Sequence record: LC819008.1 | DNA: 64,000 bases | Strand: one strand, 5' to 3' | Part shown: piece after piece, positions 7,018 to 18,519 of the stretch | Numbering within the stretch: position 1 is the first letter of the stretch | Layout: each line of letters begins with the position of its first letter | Made by a program: the position numbers and the translations under genes | The notes under the pieces: generated by a model | The model's database searches: none | The model's input: the letters and a program-made list of their open reading frames with translations, nothing else | Told to the model about the DNA's origin: nothing

Positions 7018-8034
7018 TTAGAACACCAGGCCGTTGGATGCACGTTTCTTCGTGCCATCCGACAGCTTGTTCTTCACGACGCGAGCAGCTTCACGCTGTT
7101 CGTAATCGGCGACTTGCTTGCGAAGGCCCTTGACGACCGTGTCGAGGAAACCATCAGCCACCGCGAAATGCAGCGGGAAGCTGAGTGCACGCTTGTCGAC
7201 CGGCAAAGCTGCTTCATGCTCGACGATATGAACCGGTACGCCGACACGTTGGTATTCGACCGGCTGGCCGACTTTCGTGTTGTTCAGGTCCGTGTTCAGC
7301 GTTGCGACCGAGATCAGGTTGACGTCGCCGATCACCATCTTTTCCTGGTGGATCGACAGCACGCCGACTTGCGGTGCGTACGTGGTGACTTCGTCGAAGT
7401 GCAGCCAGTTGTGCAAATCGCGTTGGTCCAGGTTCTTGTTCTGGCCGCTGTAGAGCGCGGTCAGGCACGAGATTGCCAGATGAACCTTCGCGTCGATCTC
7501 TTCGATCGTGCCGTCGACACCGTTTTGCAGGAATTGCAGAACGATCGGTTTCTCGCGTGCTTCGACGATGCCTTCGTACGATTCGAGAGTGCCGATGCAG
7601 TTCTCGATGTAGTTCTTGGTGTCGTCACCGCCGATTACGAATGCGATTACCGACTTGCCCTGGTTCAGCGCTTCCGAAACGATCGACGGACCCATCACCG
7701 AACCCGAGCCGCCGGTAGCGGAATGGATCACGATGTTGATGTCGCCCAGCGGGAAACGTTGCAGCATTTCGCCGGTGTACTTGACGATGTCTGCGCCGTT
7801 GTGGCTACGCTTACCGCCCGAGCCGTTGGCTTCCGGCAGCTGATAGAAGAACTCTTCGGGCACGCCGAAGGTAGATGCTTTGGAGGTGTCCATGTACACC
7901 GGATTGACTTCTGCGTAACCGGCATTCTTCTTGCCGCGTTCGAGTTCGAAGTACTTGCCGATACCGATGCCTGCACCGCCCGTGCAGAAAATGTTGATTT
8001 TGCCCAGCGTGTTGGTATTGTTCAGATCCGACAT
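7018..8034 (-). CDS. phuZ: Phage tubulin PhuZ (spindle GTPase)
   Basis: Tubulin/FtsZ motifs 'FCTGGAGIGIG' and 'GSGGKRS', signature 'HSATGGSGSVMGP', T7 loop 'LDQRD', and a C-terminal tail ending 'GLVF' like PhuZ. 338 aa. Confidence 0.93.
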   Translation of the reverse strand: MSDLNNTNTLGKINIFCTGGAGIGIGKYFELERGKKNAGYAEVNPVYMDTSKASTFGVPEEFFYQLPEANGSGGKRSHNGADIVKYTGEMLQRFPLGDINIVIHSATGGSGSVMGPSIVSEALNQGKSVIAFVIGGDDTKNYIENCIGTLESYEGIVEAREKPIVLQFLQNGVDGTIEEIDAKVHLAISCLTALYSGQNKNLDQRDLHNWLHFDEVTTYAPQVGVLSIHQEKMVIGDVNLISVATLNTDLNNTKVGQPVEYQRVGVPVHIVEHEAALPVDKRALSFPLHFAVADGFLDTVVKGLRKQVADYEQREAARVVKNKLSDGTKKRASNGLVF

Positions 8035-13019: not shown

Positions 13020-13076
13020 GGATGTAACTCCTTGTGGTACAACATTTTAAAAGGTTTACAGCGGAAACTCACAATC

Positions 13077-13091
13077 GTTATATGTTTCTGA
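13077..13091 (-). promoter_or_regulatory. Early-promoter-like motif
   Basis: Minus strand TCAGAAACATATAAC, 58 nt upstream of the 13019 start. Confidence 0.6.
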
Positions 13092-13503
13092 AACAATCTA
13101 GAGTTCCAACCTTTCAAAGAATCAAAGAGCATAGCTTTGAAAGACCGAAACGCCCTTTCGGACGTCTCGGTTCTCTCTGGGGGGATGAATGTGGTTGTGT
13201 ATCCCTCCAGATCATGGAGGGATCATAGTTTCTTTTTATACGCCTTCCACAGGCGTATCACTTTTTTCTTTTCTTTCTTTCAAAAACTTTAGACTTATTA
13301 TTCTTATTATTGTAAATACGTTAGTATTTACAATACTAACGTTTATAACTAATTCTAAAATTCTCTCTACAAGGTTCTGGTCACATTTAGAAAAATATAT
13401 GTTTATGCCTGTTAAGGCAGCAAAACTGTCCGGTAAAAATTCGGCAAGAAGCACAGATCATCTGACATCCGTTCCACTATCAAACGCAAAGGACGAAACG
13501 AAC

Positions 13504-14151
13504 ATGGGCCTCGTAGGCACTCTGCGCGAGATCGAAAAAACCTCGCCCGAAGAACTCAACCGCTATTCCGAAAACCGTCCCGTCATGGTCGACGGTTCCC
13601 TGTCCGAACTCGTGACTCAGGCACTGAATGTCGCCTACACGAAAAAAGACATGACATCGGGTAAACCGTACTACGGTCATCAAAACGCAACGGGCGAACC
13701 GCCTCCTGGCGCAGGCAACATTCCCGACATCCTGAACCCGGATACTCCGCGTCAGGATCCGAACATCGTCAAGCCTTCGCTTGAAGGCATGCAGCAAATG
13801 GGCGCAGATGCAATTGCGACGGCAGCTGCTGTGCTCGAAGAAGCCGTCAACGTGAACGACGGCCACGAACACCGCGTGGGTGAAGATCCGCTCATGGTTT
13901 ACGCCATTCCGGAAGACGGTAAGGTCACGGAAGAAATGAACGCGAACATCGACATGTACGGCGACTCCGGTGCCATGGATCCGTCGAACTTCGTGTTTGT
14001 TTTCACCGACAAGAACGATACTGTTGGAAGCATCGACTATCGTTGCGTCGATCTGAGCCAGAAAGTGAAGGACTACGAGAGCAAGGGCGCCAAGGTGTAC
14101 CAGTCGCTCGAATCGTTCTTCCGCGACTACGACAACCTGCGTAAGAAGTAA
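13504..14151 (+). CDS. phiKZ-like putative virion (head) protein
   Basis: ATG 13504 with an AAGGA RBS. The longer ORF start (13189) runs through AT-rich non-coding-like DNA. Contains 'DGSLSELVTQALNVAY' and 'PSLEG', a possible S/A/G-X-E head-protease site. Confidence 0.6.
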   Translation: MGLVGTLREIEKTSPEELNRYSENRPVMVDGSLSELVTQALNVAYTKKDMTSGKPYYGHQNATGEPPPGAGNIPDILNPDTPRQDPNIVKPSLEGMQQMGADAIATAAAVLEEAVNVNDGHEHRVGEDPLMVYAIPEDGKVTEEMNANIDMYGDSGAMDPSNFVFVFTDKNDTVGSIDYRCVDLSQKVKDYESKGAKVYQSLESFFRDYDNLRKK

Positions 14152-15398
14152 TGGACGGCCAGATCAAGAAAGTCCTGGATGCCGAATTCGATCACTTGCC
14201 GATCGACAAACGGCTCCTGGACAAAGTCCTGAAATACGAAAAGGATTTCATCAACAAGAACGAAGACCATATCACCTTCTTCGGTGGTCACCTCATGGGG
14301 GTGCAGGTGGTTCGTTTCGATCCCCGAGATCGACAGTACTGGTTCGATGAAATCCTCGAAATCAATGAGCAGGCTCTCGAAGAACCTCTCTACGCTCTGC
14401 GTGATCCGCATCATCCGAAAGATCCGCTGATCGACCCAGACTTCAATGTCCGCTCGGATGTCATGAACATCACCTGCGGATATCTCATCCATCGATTCCT
14501 CACCGCAAACCACCTTCCGCACGACAAGCAAAAGGAAGGCGCCGAATGTGTGGTGCGAATCATGCTGTACAAGTTCCTGACTTCACTGCTCTGGAACTAC
14601 TTCAAGTACCCGGCCAATCCTGCGGTAGCGGAAGCTACCTATAACGCTTTGTCGCTGAAGTTCGGCTTGAAGAAAAACGGCAACTGGAAAAAATACCTGG
14701 ACGAACGCGCTCACATCACTGTCGAGCCTGGTTCGATCCACTACAAGACGCTTGTCAACATGAAAGACGACGAGCAGTTCCTGTACTTCATCGGCGATAC
14801 GCAGGGTCGTATTCGCGGCACGGTGAAATCGATCTATGCGATCTTCGACCAGATGAACAAGGCTGGTATCAAGATCGTCTCCGCCTCCTCTGTCATGGAG
14901 TACGATGGCGAAATGATCCTGAAGGACAAGTCGAGAACCTACCAGTCGGAAATCCGTTATATCTCCGATGTGATTGGTGACCGCGGTTCGTTCATCAAGC
15001 CTGAACTTCTGAAGATCATTGAGAAGTCGGTGCCGACCGCCAACCCCGACATGTTGTTGAAGACTCTCCAGTGGATGTCTGACAACGCAGGTTATGGTAA
15101 GGACGACATCGTGAACCAGCTGACGACCAAGACGGTTATCTACTCGTTCAACTATCTCGCCCAGAATCCTGGACTCATCAAAGGCAAGCGCGACATCTCC
15201 GGCGTACTCTTCCGTTTGCGTGGTTCGTTTATGGCATCCCGTTCTTCGGACGAGGATCTCATGCAACTGCGAGAAATGGCTGAGCAGATTGCTGGGTTCG
15301 CAACTGGCTCTCGCAACGACACGGTAAAGAAGTCGATCCGCACGGCGGTTCTGCTTTACATCATCGGTCGGATCATGGCGAAGGACTACTACTCATGA
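14151..15398 (+). CDS. Conserved phiKZ-like core hypothetical protein
   Basis: 415 aa, TAATG-coupled to the upstream gene, with strong phage codon bias. Confidence 0.75.
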   Translation: MDGQIKKVLDAEFDHLPIDKRLLDKVLKYEKDFINKNEDHITFFGGHLMGVQVVRFDPRDRQYWFDEILEINEQALEEPLYALRDPHHPKDPLIDPDFNVRSDVMNITCGYLIHRFLTANHLPHDKQKEGAECVVRIMLYKFLTSLLWNYFKYPANPAVAEATYNALSLKFGLKKNGNWKKYLDERAHITVEPGSIHYKTLVNMKDDEQFLYFIGDTQGRIRGTVKSIYAIFDQMNKAGIKIVSASSVMEYDGEMILKDKSRTYQSEIRYISDVIGDRGSFIKPELLKIIEKSVPTANPDMLLKTLQWMSDNAGYGKDDIVNQLTTKTVIYSFNYLAQNPGLIKGKRDISGVLFRLRGSFMASRSSDEDLMQLREMAEQIAGFATGSRNDTVKKSIRTAVLLYIIGRIMAKDYYS

Positions 15399-15817
15399 CG
15401 CGTGAAACCGTCACCGTCGATGAACTGAATCCCCTCCAGCTTGAGCAGTATCATGCCTTGCTGGAGGAGTCTGATAGTGAACCGATGTTCTACGGTAAGC
15501 CGTTAGACCGCAAAGCTAAACGTCAGATCGTCCTTGATGACGATGACAATGTCGTAGGGGCCTTTGAGTACACCCGCACCCTTTGGGAAGGTACGTACTA
15601 CTGGCGAGCCAACCGTCCGTATGTCATGAAAGCGCATCGTGGCAAAGGACTGTTGTATCCTGCTCTTCGACTCTGGTTCTTAAATCGACGCCCGGCTCTT
15701 GCCTGGATCGATGACGAAAACCTTGCATCGATTCGCCTTTTCTTCTCGCTTGGCTTTTCGAGAGAATATGCGTACACGATGCACGGCAAGCTGGGACATT
15801 TTTACGTCCTTCATTAA
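15395..15817 (+). CDS. GNAT-family N-acetyltransferase
   Basis: Acetyl-CoA motif A 'YVMKAHRGKGL' and motif B 'ENLASIRLFFSLGF'; ATGA overlap with the upstream gene. Confidence 0.8.
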   Translation: MTRETVTVDELNPLQLEQYHALLEESDSEPMFYGKPLDRKAKRQIVLDDDDNVVGAFEYTRTLWEGTYYWRANRPYVMKAHRGKGLLYPALRLWFLNRRPALAWIDDENLASIRLFFSLGFSREYAYTMHGKLGHFYVLH

Positions 15818-15847
15818 ACGCCATCAACTTAAGGTTAGGCACCCAAA

Positions 15848-16024
15848 ATGGCACCGCGCACCAAGCTTCAGAAGTCAATGACCAATAACTCCAAGATTCG
15901 TGATGCTGTCACGAATTCGGCTGCAACCATTTCGGTGGGTGAGCCAAGCCTCATGTCTCGCCAAGGTGCCCCGAAGAGCATTAAAGTGCAAATCGGAAAA
16001 GGCGGGCTGGGGAAAGCAAAATAA
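15848..16024 (+). CDS. Small basic protein (58 aa, missing from the ORF track)
   Basis: Hand translation: MAPRTKLQKSMTNNSKIRDAVTNSAATISVGEPSLMSRQGAPKSIKVQIGKGGLGKAK. In operon orientation. Confidence 0.55.
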   Translation: MAPRTKLQKSMTNNSKIRDAVTNSAATISVGEPSLMSRQGAPKSIKVQIGKGGLGKAK

Positions 16025-16078
16025 CAAAACGCAGTAGTCCTGGTCGTAATCTTTTGGATTATTCACCGGGATTTGAAA

Positions 16079-16252
16079 ATGTCGAACCGACACCTCAAGC
16101 AGCACCTGATGCAGGCTACCTTGAAGCAGCACAAAGAGCATCACGTCAAGGATCTTTACATCGTCACGGAATCGGAACATCGCGGCAAGCATGTCACGAG
16201 TACGGTTCACGTGAAGGTGGGTCGTGGCGGGCTGGAGCACGTCAAGAAGTAA
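16079..16252 (+). CDS. Small His/Lys-rich protein (57 aa, missing from the ORF track)
   Basis: Hand translation: MSNRHLKQHLMQATLKQHKEHHVKDLYIVTESEHRGKHVTSTVHVKVGRGGLEHVKK. Its stop lies 13 nt before the terminator hairpin. Confidence 0.6.
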   Translation: MSNRHLKQHLMQATLKQHKEHHVKDLYIVTESEHRGKHVTSTVHVKVGRGGLEHVKK

Positions 16253-16264
16253 GCAGCATAAGTA

Positions 16265-16294
16265 CCTACTCCTACCCGCAAGGGTAGGAGTAGG
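16265..16294. terminator. Hairpin between the convergent small-ORF operon and terminase
   Basis: 13-bp perfect stem cctactcctaccc/gggtaggagtagg with a GCAA loop. Confidence 0.7.
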
Positions 16295-16305
16295 GCCTAT
16301 GTCCG

Positions 16306-18486
16306 TCAATAAACGGTAGAACCCGAATCGACGACTCGACGATGTACCGTGTCGAGTAGATTCTTGTCCCCGCCTTTTTGATAGCCGATCCGTTTCTCTT
16401 CACGGGTCTTCTTGATCATGTCCGTAACAGAGAACGTTTCGCCTTCCTCTTCAACAACGCGTGATGCCAGAGCACCGATCTCGGCTTCGAGTCGCATTTG
16501 TACGAAGTGGTCTTGCGCTCCACCCAATTTCTGAACCAGAGCCTGGATGTCTTCGCGCAACTGACGTTGCTGGATTTCGAAGTGAGACATTTCACGCAGC
16601 GACTTCTTGGCCAGCGTGGAACTCATCACAGTCGTGTGGTCGATACCGTAGTAAGACAGGTTCTGACCAAACATTGCCAGGTAGCAAGCCAGTAGCCATG
16701 CCACACAGCCGTCGTCGTGCTGTCCCTTCGGGTGATCGACTCGACCATTCTTGACTTCGAGAGCCAGAATCTGATCGATGGTCTTGATATCGTTAACGCG
16801 GTCCATGCCGTGCCGAACGGCATTTTGCAGAACCTGGCCGTAGAGGATCGATCGTGCATTCTCGCCAGAACCTGACGTGTTGTAACCAAAGTAGGACTTG
16901 TACTTGGTGTACAGATCACCCAGCACATACTTGTCGGCACGTTTGATTTCTTCCAGAACCTCCTTGTACTTCTCGGGATCCTGAACCAGACGGTTAAAGA
17001 GTCGCTTGAATGCATTCTGACCAGTCATGCGGAACTTCAAACACAATTGATCGATAATCGCAGGACCCATGTTCTTGCATTCGATAATCGCTACAAGCTT
17101 AGGCCACTTCATCAGGATGTCGTAGAGCCAGAGCGAATAGTCGATCACGTTAGCCATGTTCACATAGCACGTGCCAATGACTTCAAGTGTTGTCAAGTCG
17201 ACATATTGCATGCCGATCTCGTCCTTACCCTGAGCTTGGGAAGGATCAATACCAAGTGCGATGTTGCCTTCTTCCATGAGTTGGTCACGGACTTTCAGGC
17301 TAACATACCACTTCGTCAAGAAGCGGGTCTTCGGATCGATTTCAGCAACGAAATCTTCACGCTGGTTTTCACGAAGCGTGTTCAGTTGTTCGGTAGACAG
17401 AGGAGATCCGCGGCCACCAGAAGTCCAGATGTTGAAGTAATCTCGATCGGCTTCTTCGCCGCTAATCATTGCCTTCTTGATGTTCTCGTAATGTTGCTTA
17501 TCCGAGATACCAAGCATGCGGTGACCAAAGGTACAGTTGATTGCAAAGCCGTTGCTCGACGATGCTTCAACCATCACTTTCAGGTCGTCCCAGTTACGCG
17601 CATCATAGATCTTGTCCGTAAACGGGAACGAGTTCGTCAGGATCTGATAAGCGTAGGAACCATCACGGTCATCTTTCTTACCGGCGGTAGTTGCCAGGAT
17701 AATGCCGTGGTGTGCGTTGTTTTCACGGGCAGAAACGAATGCCGCGTTGGTTGTCGACAGAATCGTCGTCAGTGTAGCTTTCAACCAGGAGATGTACGCA
17801 AATTCGTCAATCCGGATGTTGGCAGAAGTAAAGCCTCGGCCCACCTTGTAGGCGCCCTTCTCATCCATCCGAGGAACGTGCGTCTCGTACTTGTTTTCCA
17901 GTGCAGACAAGTAGATGTATTCCTGGTTGTTCGGATCTTTCTTCGGTATCGATCTTCGTAGATACGGAGGTAAGACTTCTTCGTATTCCTTCAAGCGCTC
18001 AATGTCGTTACGACGCAGCTGGTCTTCTTTCGTCAGCAAGTGAATGGACGAGTGAACCAGACCGAAGTTGAGCAGGTAGCGGTCAAGTGATGCAATGTTA
18101 ACCGACTTACCAGTCTGACGAGGCTGAATCAGGAAGGTCGTGATGTGGTTGAAGTAACTCCACCACAGAGCCAGGTTCCCGCGGTTGGCTAGAACAGGAC
18201 TCGGCTGCATTGCACCCTGAACAGGAATGCGTGCAATCTCACGGAAGTAGTACCAGGGGTTATCGAAACACTCCTGGGTAATCATGCCCTTGTATTCGAA
18301 GGACAGATTCGGATCGAAGGGATCTACCCCGACCAGATATTTGTTGTGTAACGCCAGGGGCCAGAGGTTATTCTGGATACCCATGTCGTCAAGAATGTAG
18401 CAAATGTCAACGAAGGACTTGTTTCGGGTTTCCAGATCGATGGTTGCATCCGGATACCGATTCCAGTCTTCTTGGAAAAGAATCAT
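16306..18486 (-). CDS. terL: Terminase large subunit (phiKZ gp025-like)
   Basis: Walker A 'LIQPRQTGKS', Walker B 'IRIDEFAY', nuclease 'ALGIDPSQ' and 'HDDGCVAW'. 726 aa, next to the structural and sheath genes. Confidence 0.92.
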   Translation of the reverse strand: MILFQEDWNRYPDATIDLETRNKSFVDICYILDDMGIQNNLWPLALHNKYLVGVDPFDPNLSFEYKGMITQECFDNPWYYFREIARIPVQGAMQPSPVLANRGNLALWWSYFNHITTFLIQPRQTGKSVNIASLDRYLLNFGLVHSSIHLLTKEDQLRRNDIERLKEYEEVLPPYLRRSIPKKDPNNQEYIYLSALENKYETHVPRMDEKGAYKVGRGFTSANIRIDEFAYISWLKATLTTILSTTNAAFVSARENNAHHGIILATTAGKKDDRDGSYAYQILTNSFPFTDKIYDARNWDDLKVMVEASSSNGFAINCTFGHRMLGISDKQHYENIKKAMISGEEADRDYFNIWTSGGRGSPLSTEQLNTLRENQREDFVAEIDPKTRFLTKWYVSLKVRDQLMEEGNIALGIDPSQAQGKDEIGMQYVDLTTLEVIGTCYVNMANVIDYSLWLYDILMKWPKLVAIIECKNMGPAIIDQLCLKFRMTGQNAFKRLFNRLVQDPEKYKEVLEEIKRADKYVLGDLYTKYKSYFGYNTSGSGENARSILYGQVLQNAVRHGMDRVNDIKTIDQILALEVKNGRVDHPKGQHDDGCVAWLLACYLAMFGQNLSYYGIDHTTVMSSTLAKKSLREMSHFEIQQRQLREDIQALVQKLGGAQDHFVQMRLEAEIGALASRVVEEEGETFSVTDMIKKTREEKRIGYQKGGDKNLLDTVHRRVVDSGSTVY

Positions 18487-18519
18487 AGAGGAATCCTAGC
18501 ACAGGGTCATAAGGTTAGT

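Follow-up and report, generated by a model that had tools for sequence, protein, structure and literature searches.

A clade-specific pair of small, highly basic proteins with a shared C-terminal module beside the large terminase gene of Ralstonia phage FLC4-4C

Small chromatin proteins can be acetylated by GNAT enzymes, as in the case of archaeal Alba with Pat and of mycobacterial HU with Eis, and GNAT toxins are also known in modules with ribbon-helix-helix antitoxins, of the TacT/TacA type. We analysed the first 64 kb (64,000 nucleotides, hereafter the window) of Ralstonia phage FLC4-4C, a Chiangmaivirus jumbo phage (LC819008.1, 225,071 bp), where an acetyltransferase gene, gp22, is followed by two short genes, gp23 and gp24, here called A and B. 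As in the Alba/Pat and HU/Eis systems, the proteins are small and basic and an acetyltransferase gene lies nearby; A and B nevertheless have no sequence or domain similarity to Alba or HU, and the FLC4-4C GNAT resembles small-molecule acetyltransferases. With TacT/TacA the locus shares a GNAT adjoining small proteins, whereas A and B lie downstream of the GNAT rather than upstream and gp22 is PAT/YncA-like. A GNAT toxin-antitoxin module was rejected on account of this downstream position and because neither A nor B has a DUF1778, ribbon-helix-helix, Pfam or PADLOC match.

A seven-residue glycine/lysine string that closes A in the window is reminiscent of the histone H4 N-terminal tail, but in A the string is C-terminal and not conserved, and neither a histone fold nor any similarity to histones was detected. 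Internal head proteins from the giant myoviruses SPN3US and phiKZ and from T4 resemble A and B insofar as the latter lie near head and packaging genes; those proteins are larger, are processed at A-X-E sites and carry N-terminal propeptides, whereas neither A nor B has a site of this kind, and the element common to the two is C-terminal. Like the clade-restricted small ORFans of jumbo phages, A and B are short, hypothetical, limited to one genus and placed at a variable junction between core genes, but they differ from these in forming a pair with a supported shared module, in their extreme charge and in the position-specific histidines of B.

Both genes were already in GenBank as hypothetical proteins, in LC819008.1 as gp23 and gp24 and in seven relatives that annotate the two of them, so that the first-pass annotation of this DNA was wrong to call them unannotated, and B was already a member of PHROG 33880. 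New here are the selection shown on both genes, a shared tail private to the pair, a clade-specific cassette with RNA hairpins, and the rejection of the histone analogy.

A three-gene insertion between a head-protein gene and the large terminase gene

Region 14000-18500 of the window is 100% identical to FLC4-4C at the same coordinates, and 84-99% identical to eight further isolates (FLC4-5C, FLC4-11C, FLC6, FLC8, RSL2, RsoM3USA, RSF1 and SURPRISE13), RSL2 and RSF1 among them being assigned to the genus Chiangmaivirus. In FLC4-4C, gp240 is homologous to chimallin (PHROG 4795 'nuclear shell protein', E 8.8e-190; PDB chimallin 7sqt, E 1.2e-11) and gp11 is a PhuZ (window 7018-8034, E 2.3e-100), and since both are present the earlier guess of a nucleus-forming phage is compatible with the gene content. 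The authors of the SURPRISE13 paper draw the same inference for their own phage (PMC11898562). Our literature search found no paper that mentions FLC4-4C. The features of the locus are the following.

13504-14151, plus strand: gp20, hypothetical protein (PHROG 29071, labelled unknown function), first gene of a co-directional array
14151-15398, plus strand: gp21, conserved Chimalliviridae protein, orthologue of SPN3US gp262; neighbour, outside the insertion
15395-15817, plus strand: gp22, 140 aa, predicted acetyltransferase of the GNAT fold, opening the clade-specific insertion of three genes
15817-15847, plus strand: leader of gene A, conserved, carrying a ribosome-binding-like AGG at -11 to -9
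15848-16024, plus strand: gene A (gp23), ATG start, 58 aa, pI 11.2, lacking His and aromatic residues, intact in all relatives (dN/dS 0.06-0.30)
15974-16021, plus strand: shared module of A, residues 43-58, from BLASTP, hhalign, shuffles and profile scan
16036-16073, plus strand: predicted intercistronic RNA hairpin whose 3' arm pairs the GGGA of gene B (16067-16070), dG -16.3 kcal/mol, z -3.4
16079-16252, plus strand: gene B (gp24), ATG start, 57 aa, pI 10.1, 9 His (PHROG 33880, E 9.4e-40; dN/dS 0.03-0.19)
16199-16249, plus strand: shared module of B, residues 41-57, from the same comparisons, modelled as beta strands with low confidence
16265-16294, no strand assigned: hairpin of 13 bp separating gene B from the convergent terminase gene, likely a bidirectional terminator
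16306-18486, minus strand: gp25, large terminase subunit, convergent neighbour (PHROG 2, E 6e-55, and annotation)

Stop and start codons overlap along gp20, gp21 and the GNAT gene, after which A follows at 30 nt and B at 54 nt. By tblastn, gp21 is found in 291 phiKZ-like phage records, in several of which the annotation reads head or virion structural protein, and its SPN3US orthologue gp262 has been detected in heads by mass spectrometry (PMC10052503). The gp21 orthologue of phage RP12, ORF023 (36% identity, E 5e-101), directly abuts the terminase gene, without GNAT, A or B, and since the RP12 junction has none of the three, they constitute an insertion of about 860 bp that is specific to the genus. 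This clade-specific cassette of three genes lies between the conserved head-protein gene and the gene for the large terminase, and a hairpin closes it. The order GNAT, A, B, hairpin and convergent terminase, with intact ORFs, is kept in nine isolates and in all metagenomic contigs examined (L010, L015-L020), and the indels of the clade fall upstream of the GNAT gene, never between it and A or B.

The closing hairpin is strong on both strands (dG -31.8 kcal/mol on the plus and -33.1 kcal/mol on the minus strand; z -6.3 and -6.6), and because 6 of its 13 pairs covary, being kept through changes on both sides in relatives, we regard it as a conserved and probably bidirectional terminator. For the hairpin between A and B, the predicted minimum-energy fold pairs the GGGA of B in 7 of 8 genomes and contigs, window included, and its covariation is not scorable because of indels. 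A hairpin placed over the ribosome-binding-like site of B suggests, as far as the predicted fold goes, that translation of B may be controlled. The leader of A is largely invariant in six genomes at a synonymous divergence of about 0.8. It was considered as a common promoter and rejected, since its motifs recur nowhere else in the window, and no shared intergenic motif was found.

The presence of a GNAT upstream of A, proposed in the first-pass annotation, holds for the gp22 family, which matches both PF00583 and solved GNAT structures. The window protein by itself is just below the Pfam cut-off for PF00583 (E 0.0027; 18.4 vs 20.7 bits), and 5 of 5 family members match the domain, with a best E of 2.7e-5. 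The family profile matches YncA (3dr6, E 4.2e-5) and phosphinothricin acetyltransferase (1yr0, E 1.4e-4), and the acetyl-CoA loop aligns as R-G-K-G-L in the gp22 family vs Q-G-K-G-L in the solved GNATs. Hence gp22 is a predicted GNAT whose nearest solved relatives acetylate amino-acid analogues or small molecules, not proteins, although as a guide to its substrate this sequence resemblance is weak. At the sensitivity of word-based searches gp22 is clade-restricted. It is also the fastest-evolving gene of the block: at the nucleotide level it is 69.8% identical to RSL2, whereas gp21 reaches 93.2%, A 93.8%, B 94.8% and the terminase gene 90.9%, and because its identity is so far below theirs, gp22 does not co-evolve with A and B. 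The gene has a mosaic appearance, with the same 69.8% to RSL2 and 60.5% to SURPRISE13 between flanking genes at 84-95%, and this mosaicism suggests that alleles may have been exchanged by recombination.

Two conserved genes under purifying selection

The first-pass annotation had described two ORFs between the GNAT stop and a terminator, and we found both exactly as claimed, A with 58 aa at 15848-16024 and B with 57 aa at 16079-16252, together occupying the gap from the GNAT stop (15817) to the strong hairpin 16265-16294. Its quoted C-termini are exact and its count of 9 His in the 57 residues of B is confirmed. For B an alternative start exists, an upstream TTG at 16073 that would give 59 aa. 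B matches PHROG 33880 over its full length (1-57 of 57), a family labelled function unknown, and A has no PHROG match. The RefSeq record of RSL2 (NC_028950.1; L002:2355-2977) omits the annotation of the GNAT gene and of gene A, and both ORFs are intact there.

The check by tblastn and dN/dS in related phages that had been proposed for the two ORFs showed A and B to be conserved in relatives, with dN/dS between 0.03 and 0.30 (pairwise Nei-Gojobori, dS up to 0.97). The ranges of the two genes resemble that of the GNAT gene (0.09-0.24). These comparisons are drawn from one narrow clade, which limits their power accordingly. The triplets AGG and GGA show a 4-5 fold enrichment at -17 to -5 of FLC4-4C genes, and A and B each have a ribosome-binding-like element of this kind (AGG and GGGA, respectively) that ends 8 nt before the ATG. 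We conclude that both ORFs are genuine genes of the Chiangmaivirus jumbo phages, encoding 6-kDa products with a large positive net charge.

Could they instead be chance reading frames with a coincidentally shared tail? Their shortness, the lack of known homologues and the low confidence of the structure models would be expected of such frames, but purifying selection acts on both ORFs, all relatives keep them, including a metagenomic contig in which B is only 66% identical to that of the window, the similarity of the tails is statistically significant, and ribosome-binding-like sites precede both. Selection and conservation effectively refute this reading, and we give it a practically negligible probability. 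A 144-codon antisense ORF on the minus strand (window 15875-16309) overlaps both A and B; it is probably spurious because its frame is not conserved, the longest open stretches in relatives being 109, 63, 34, 29 and 26 codons.

The strong basicity noted at first reading stands, A and B ranking as the top two in positive charge when set among the 44 annotated proteins of the first 50 kb of FLC4-4C. The product of gene A has a net charge of +9. Histidine makes up 15.8% of B vs 1.74% in the same 44 proteins (binomial P 6e-7), and 7 of the 9 histidines are kept in 7 of 7 homologues, several of them spaced i/i+3 or i/i+4; since B varies at hardly any position within this narrow clade, the histidines are not distinctively conserved. 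In A, conservation peaks over the uncharged central residues 22-42 and is next highest in the tail, and the basic N-terminus is variable. Conserved lysine columns show no exchange of K to R, a mere hint because divergence is small.

Both proteins fall on the disordered side of the boundary in a charge-hydropathy plot, and AlphaFold models have a pLDDT of 58 for A as well as for B. At this confidence, A is modelled as a helix (residues 6-23) with two short strands, and B as three strands at residues 25-55, module included. A fold search with the low-confidence model of B gave generic beta-sheet fragments at best (E 0.4).

A C-terminal module shared by A and B

The first-pass annotation had taken the similar ends of A and B, summarised as a 'VxxG[KR]GGL' motif, as a sign of paralogy. 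The likeness itself goes beyond chance over the last 17 or so residues, but the motif as it was written is not conserved. BLASTP of A against B aligns the last 15-17 residues only (window pair, E 7e-4; RSF1 pair, E 2e-5), and hhalign of the A family against the B family gives E 4e-4, yet a probability of just 34%. Shuffled sequences reached the observed local-alignment score 0-1 times in 2000 in three genomes and 12 times in 2000 in RsoM3USA. The first 40 residues of A and B score no better than shuffles. Since the likeness is limited to the last ~17 residues, A and B share a homologous C-terminal module, and the paralogy that had been proposed for the whole proteins is supported for this module only, their first 40 residues not being significantly alike.

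Across both families the invariant columns of the module are one V, two G and one K, and 'GGL' varies: after the K/R, relatives have G, R, N or H, and the L of the motif appears as L, M, I or V. The likeness between A and B is in fact greater in divergent relatives than in the window, as in RSF1, where A ends in SSVKVQIGKRGMEKVKK and B in STVHVKVGRHGVEHVKK. The layout of the module consists of a strand of alternating hydrophobic and polar residues, a G-K/R-x-G turn, a short strand and a K-K end. From this alternation and turn we infer that the module would fit an amphipathic beta hairpin whose hydrophobic face calls for burial against a partner. A profile of the module was scanned against all stop-to-stop frames of the 225,071-bp genome, in six frames and on joined consecutive pieces of the unaltered public phage record, and it found only A and B, at 30-36 bits; the next-best score in this six-frame scan of the FLC4-4C genome was 5.6 bits (E 4.7). 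Because only these two are found, the module is private to the A/B pair and not a tag common to many phage proteins; it is real, but confined to one genus.

Searches for relatives of known function found none. At E<=1 neither A nor B has a family in Pfam or a match in NCBIfam, and this includes the domains of the nucleoid and chromatin proteins HU, Alba and Sso7d/Cren7; PADLOC has no match for A or B either. Searches of PDB sequences with single sequences and with a profile returned nothing of known function for the two proteins: phmmer of B against PDB chains found only TRIM69 and WDR24 (E 0.19-1.3), and phmmer of A against all PDB chains found 0 matches at E<=10, though H4 is abundant in the PDB. 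Against 50,697 phage records, tblastn with A and B at E<=1 found solely 11 Chiangmaivirus records. When A, B and the GNAT were used in word-based searches of 5.8 billion proteins, close relatives alone came up, and an exhaustive HMMER profile pass over 1.84 billion representatives added one divergent B (P0010), being otherwise confined to the clade. Five giant tandem-repeat proteins from the exhaustive search were rejected as an artefact of summed scores, their single repeats scoring 0.5-4.9 bits. Rfam showed nothing meaningful at the locus.

The likeness to the histone H4 tail that had been suggested for the end of A does not hold, with no PDB match for A at E<=10, no Pfam family at E<=1 and glycines that vary. 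The two glycines that flank the motif have given way to R and E in 3 of 7 A homologues, and where the window has the string G-K-G-G-L-G-K, relatives show K-R-G-M-E-K.

Possible roles of the two proteins

We hypothesise, tentatively and somewhat short of calling it probable, that A and B are two largely disordered polycations that pair or dock through their common beta module and bind a polyanion. Each would be largely unfolded alone; the amphipathic module would offer a pairing surface, for homo- or hetero-oligomers or for docking on a common partner, and the cationic remainder could then bind the polyanion, most likely nucleic acid. In B, the invariant histidines may add metal- or pH-dependent binding, the RNA hairpin over its ribosome-binding site may tune its translation, and expression of both would probably be late, together with the preceding head genes. 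The GNAT is a co-inherited neighbour, and A and B are possible substrates of it by virtue of their adjacency alone. One observation counts against binding to nucleic acid, namely that the most conserved part of A is the uncharged stretch of residues 22-42, which by its composition looks more like a motif for docking a protein partner than a DNA-binding surface. What we found is compatible with the roles put forward at first reading, in which the proteins would condense DNA, bind metal or lie inside the capsid. If A and B do bind phage DNA or RNA, they would offer a first case of dedicated small nucleic-acid-coating proteins in a chimallin-type phage, and such coating would bear on how a genome of 225 kb is organised or packaged.

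The role in the capsid would have A and B made late and packaged as internal polycations that neutralise the charge of the genome, possibly to be ejected with it. Their genes are indeed co-directional with, and directly downstream of, the orthologue of a head protein verified by mass spectrometry, beside terminase and virion structural genes; the products combine extreme basicity with predicted disorder, and related phages package many internal head proteins (PMC10052503). But the genes are clade-specific and absent at this junction in RP12, phiKZ and SPN3US, the module occurs in no other phage protein and so is no general packaging tag, and our literature search found no virion proteome for the clade. 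The A-X-E motif described for cleavage by the prohead protease of SPN3US (definition in PMC10052503) is likewise absent from the sequences of A and B, and we hold this role to be unlikely. The strong conservation of the uncharged stretch of A could also be read as a contact with the host, in which case A and B would be takeover factors that bind a host protein or the ribosome and inhibit or redirect it, docking by means of this stretch and the shared tail. Small size is typical of host-takeover factors, and A and B are accessory genes specific to the clade, placed at a junction where other Chimalliviridae carry unrelated small ORFs. Against this, they are surrounded by head and packaging genes of late type, not by an early region, and have no similarity to known inhibitor families in Pfam, PADLOC or NCBIfam, and to us a takeover function seems distinctly unlikely.

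The idea that A and B are chromatin-like condensers of DNA in the phage nucleus, with the GNAT acetylating lysines of H4-like tails and thereby switching their affinity for DNA, draws on the adjacency of the three genes in every genome seen and their joint absence from RP12, on clade indels that lie upstream of the GNAT gene and never separate it from A or B, on lysine columns conserved without replacement by R, and on the chimallin and PhuZ encoded by the phage. Adjacency within a narrow clade is, however, explicable by common descent, and several findings weigh on the other side: histone similarity was not detectable, the G-K-G-G-L-G-K string gives way to K-R-G-M-E-K in relatives, the nearest solved relatives of gp22 are small-molecule, amino-acid acetyltransferases, and gp22 diverges independently of A and B. 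Phage GNATs can moreover act on host proteins, Rac being an example cited in a review (PMC13282480). Such a switch appears very unlikely. About as doubtful is a reading of B as primarily a protein that binds or buffers metal (Zn, Ni or Cu), with A as its His-free paralogue in another role; the abundance of histidine (15.8%, P 6e-7) and the retention of 7 of 9 in 7 of 7 homologues, several at i/i+3 or i/i+4, are what one would look for, but B has no Cys and no match to a metal-binding family, and its histidines do not stand out where almost all of its residues are conserved in the clade. A combination of these themes can also be imagined, a minimal phage 'chromatin' in which the polycation pair, joined by its beta tail, would coat or condense DNA, with the GNAT tuning it through N-terminal or lysine acetylation and the histidines of B through metal or pH, and this we consider highly improbable.

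Beyond Chiangmaivirus, the junction of the head gene and the terminase gene carries unrelated micro-ORFs, 024.1/024.2 in phiKZ, gp261 in SPN3US and Xoo-sp14_191 in Xoo-sp14 (loci L012:6196-6536, L027:2752-2991 and L014:7131-7265). The small ORFs beside the terminase genes of phiKZ and Xoo-sp14 were considered as relatives of A or B and rejected as unrelated, and phiKZ gp023 was rejected as a relative of the GNAT. The gp21-type/terminase junction looks like a hot spot for small accessory genes in Chimalliviridae, and the cassette described here shows it as a site where these phages acquire them. In a 224-kb metagenomic contig (ERZ23287672; L015:1780-2328) the gap between gp21 and the GNAT gene holds an extra gene of 182 aa without a Pfam match.

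A second GNAT gene, unrelated in sequence to gp22, lies between the gp20 and gp21 orthologues of FLC8, FLC4-11C, RSL2, RsoM3USA, RSF1 and SURPRISE13 (for example at L007:715-1098, L003:57-491 and L002:716-1096). It is absent from FLC4-4C (window 14151), FLC4-5C and FLC6, where the stop of gp20 overlaps the start of gp21. Upstream of gp20, window 13020-13503 is a divergent intergenic region of 484 bp, the longest in the first 50 kb and AT-rich (GC 0.37 vs 0.52), with terminator-like hairpins at 13201-13223 and 13238-13258 and an AT-rich palindrome near 13309-13334. This region is likely the control region of the gp20-gp24 array.
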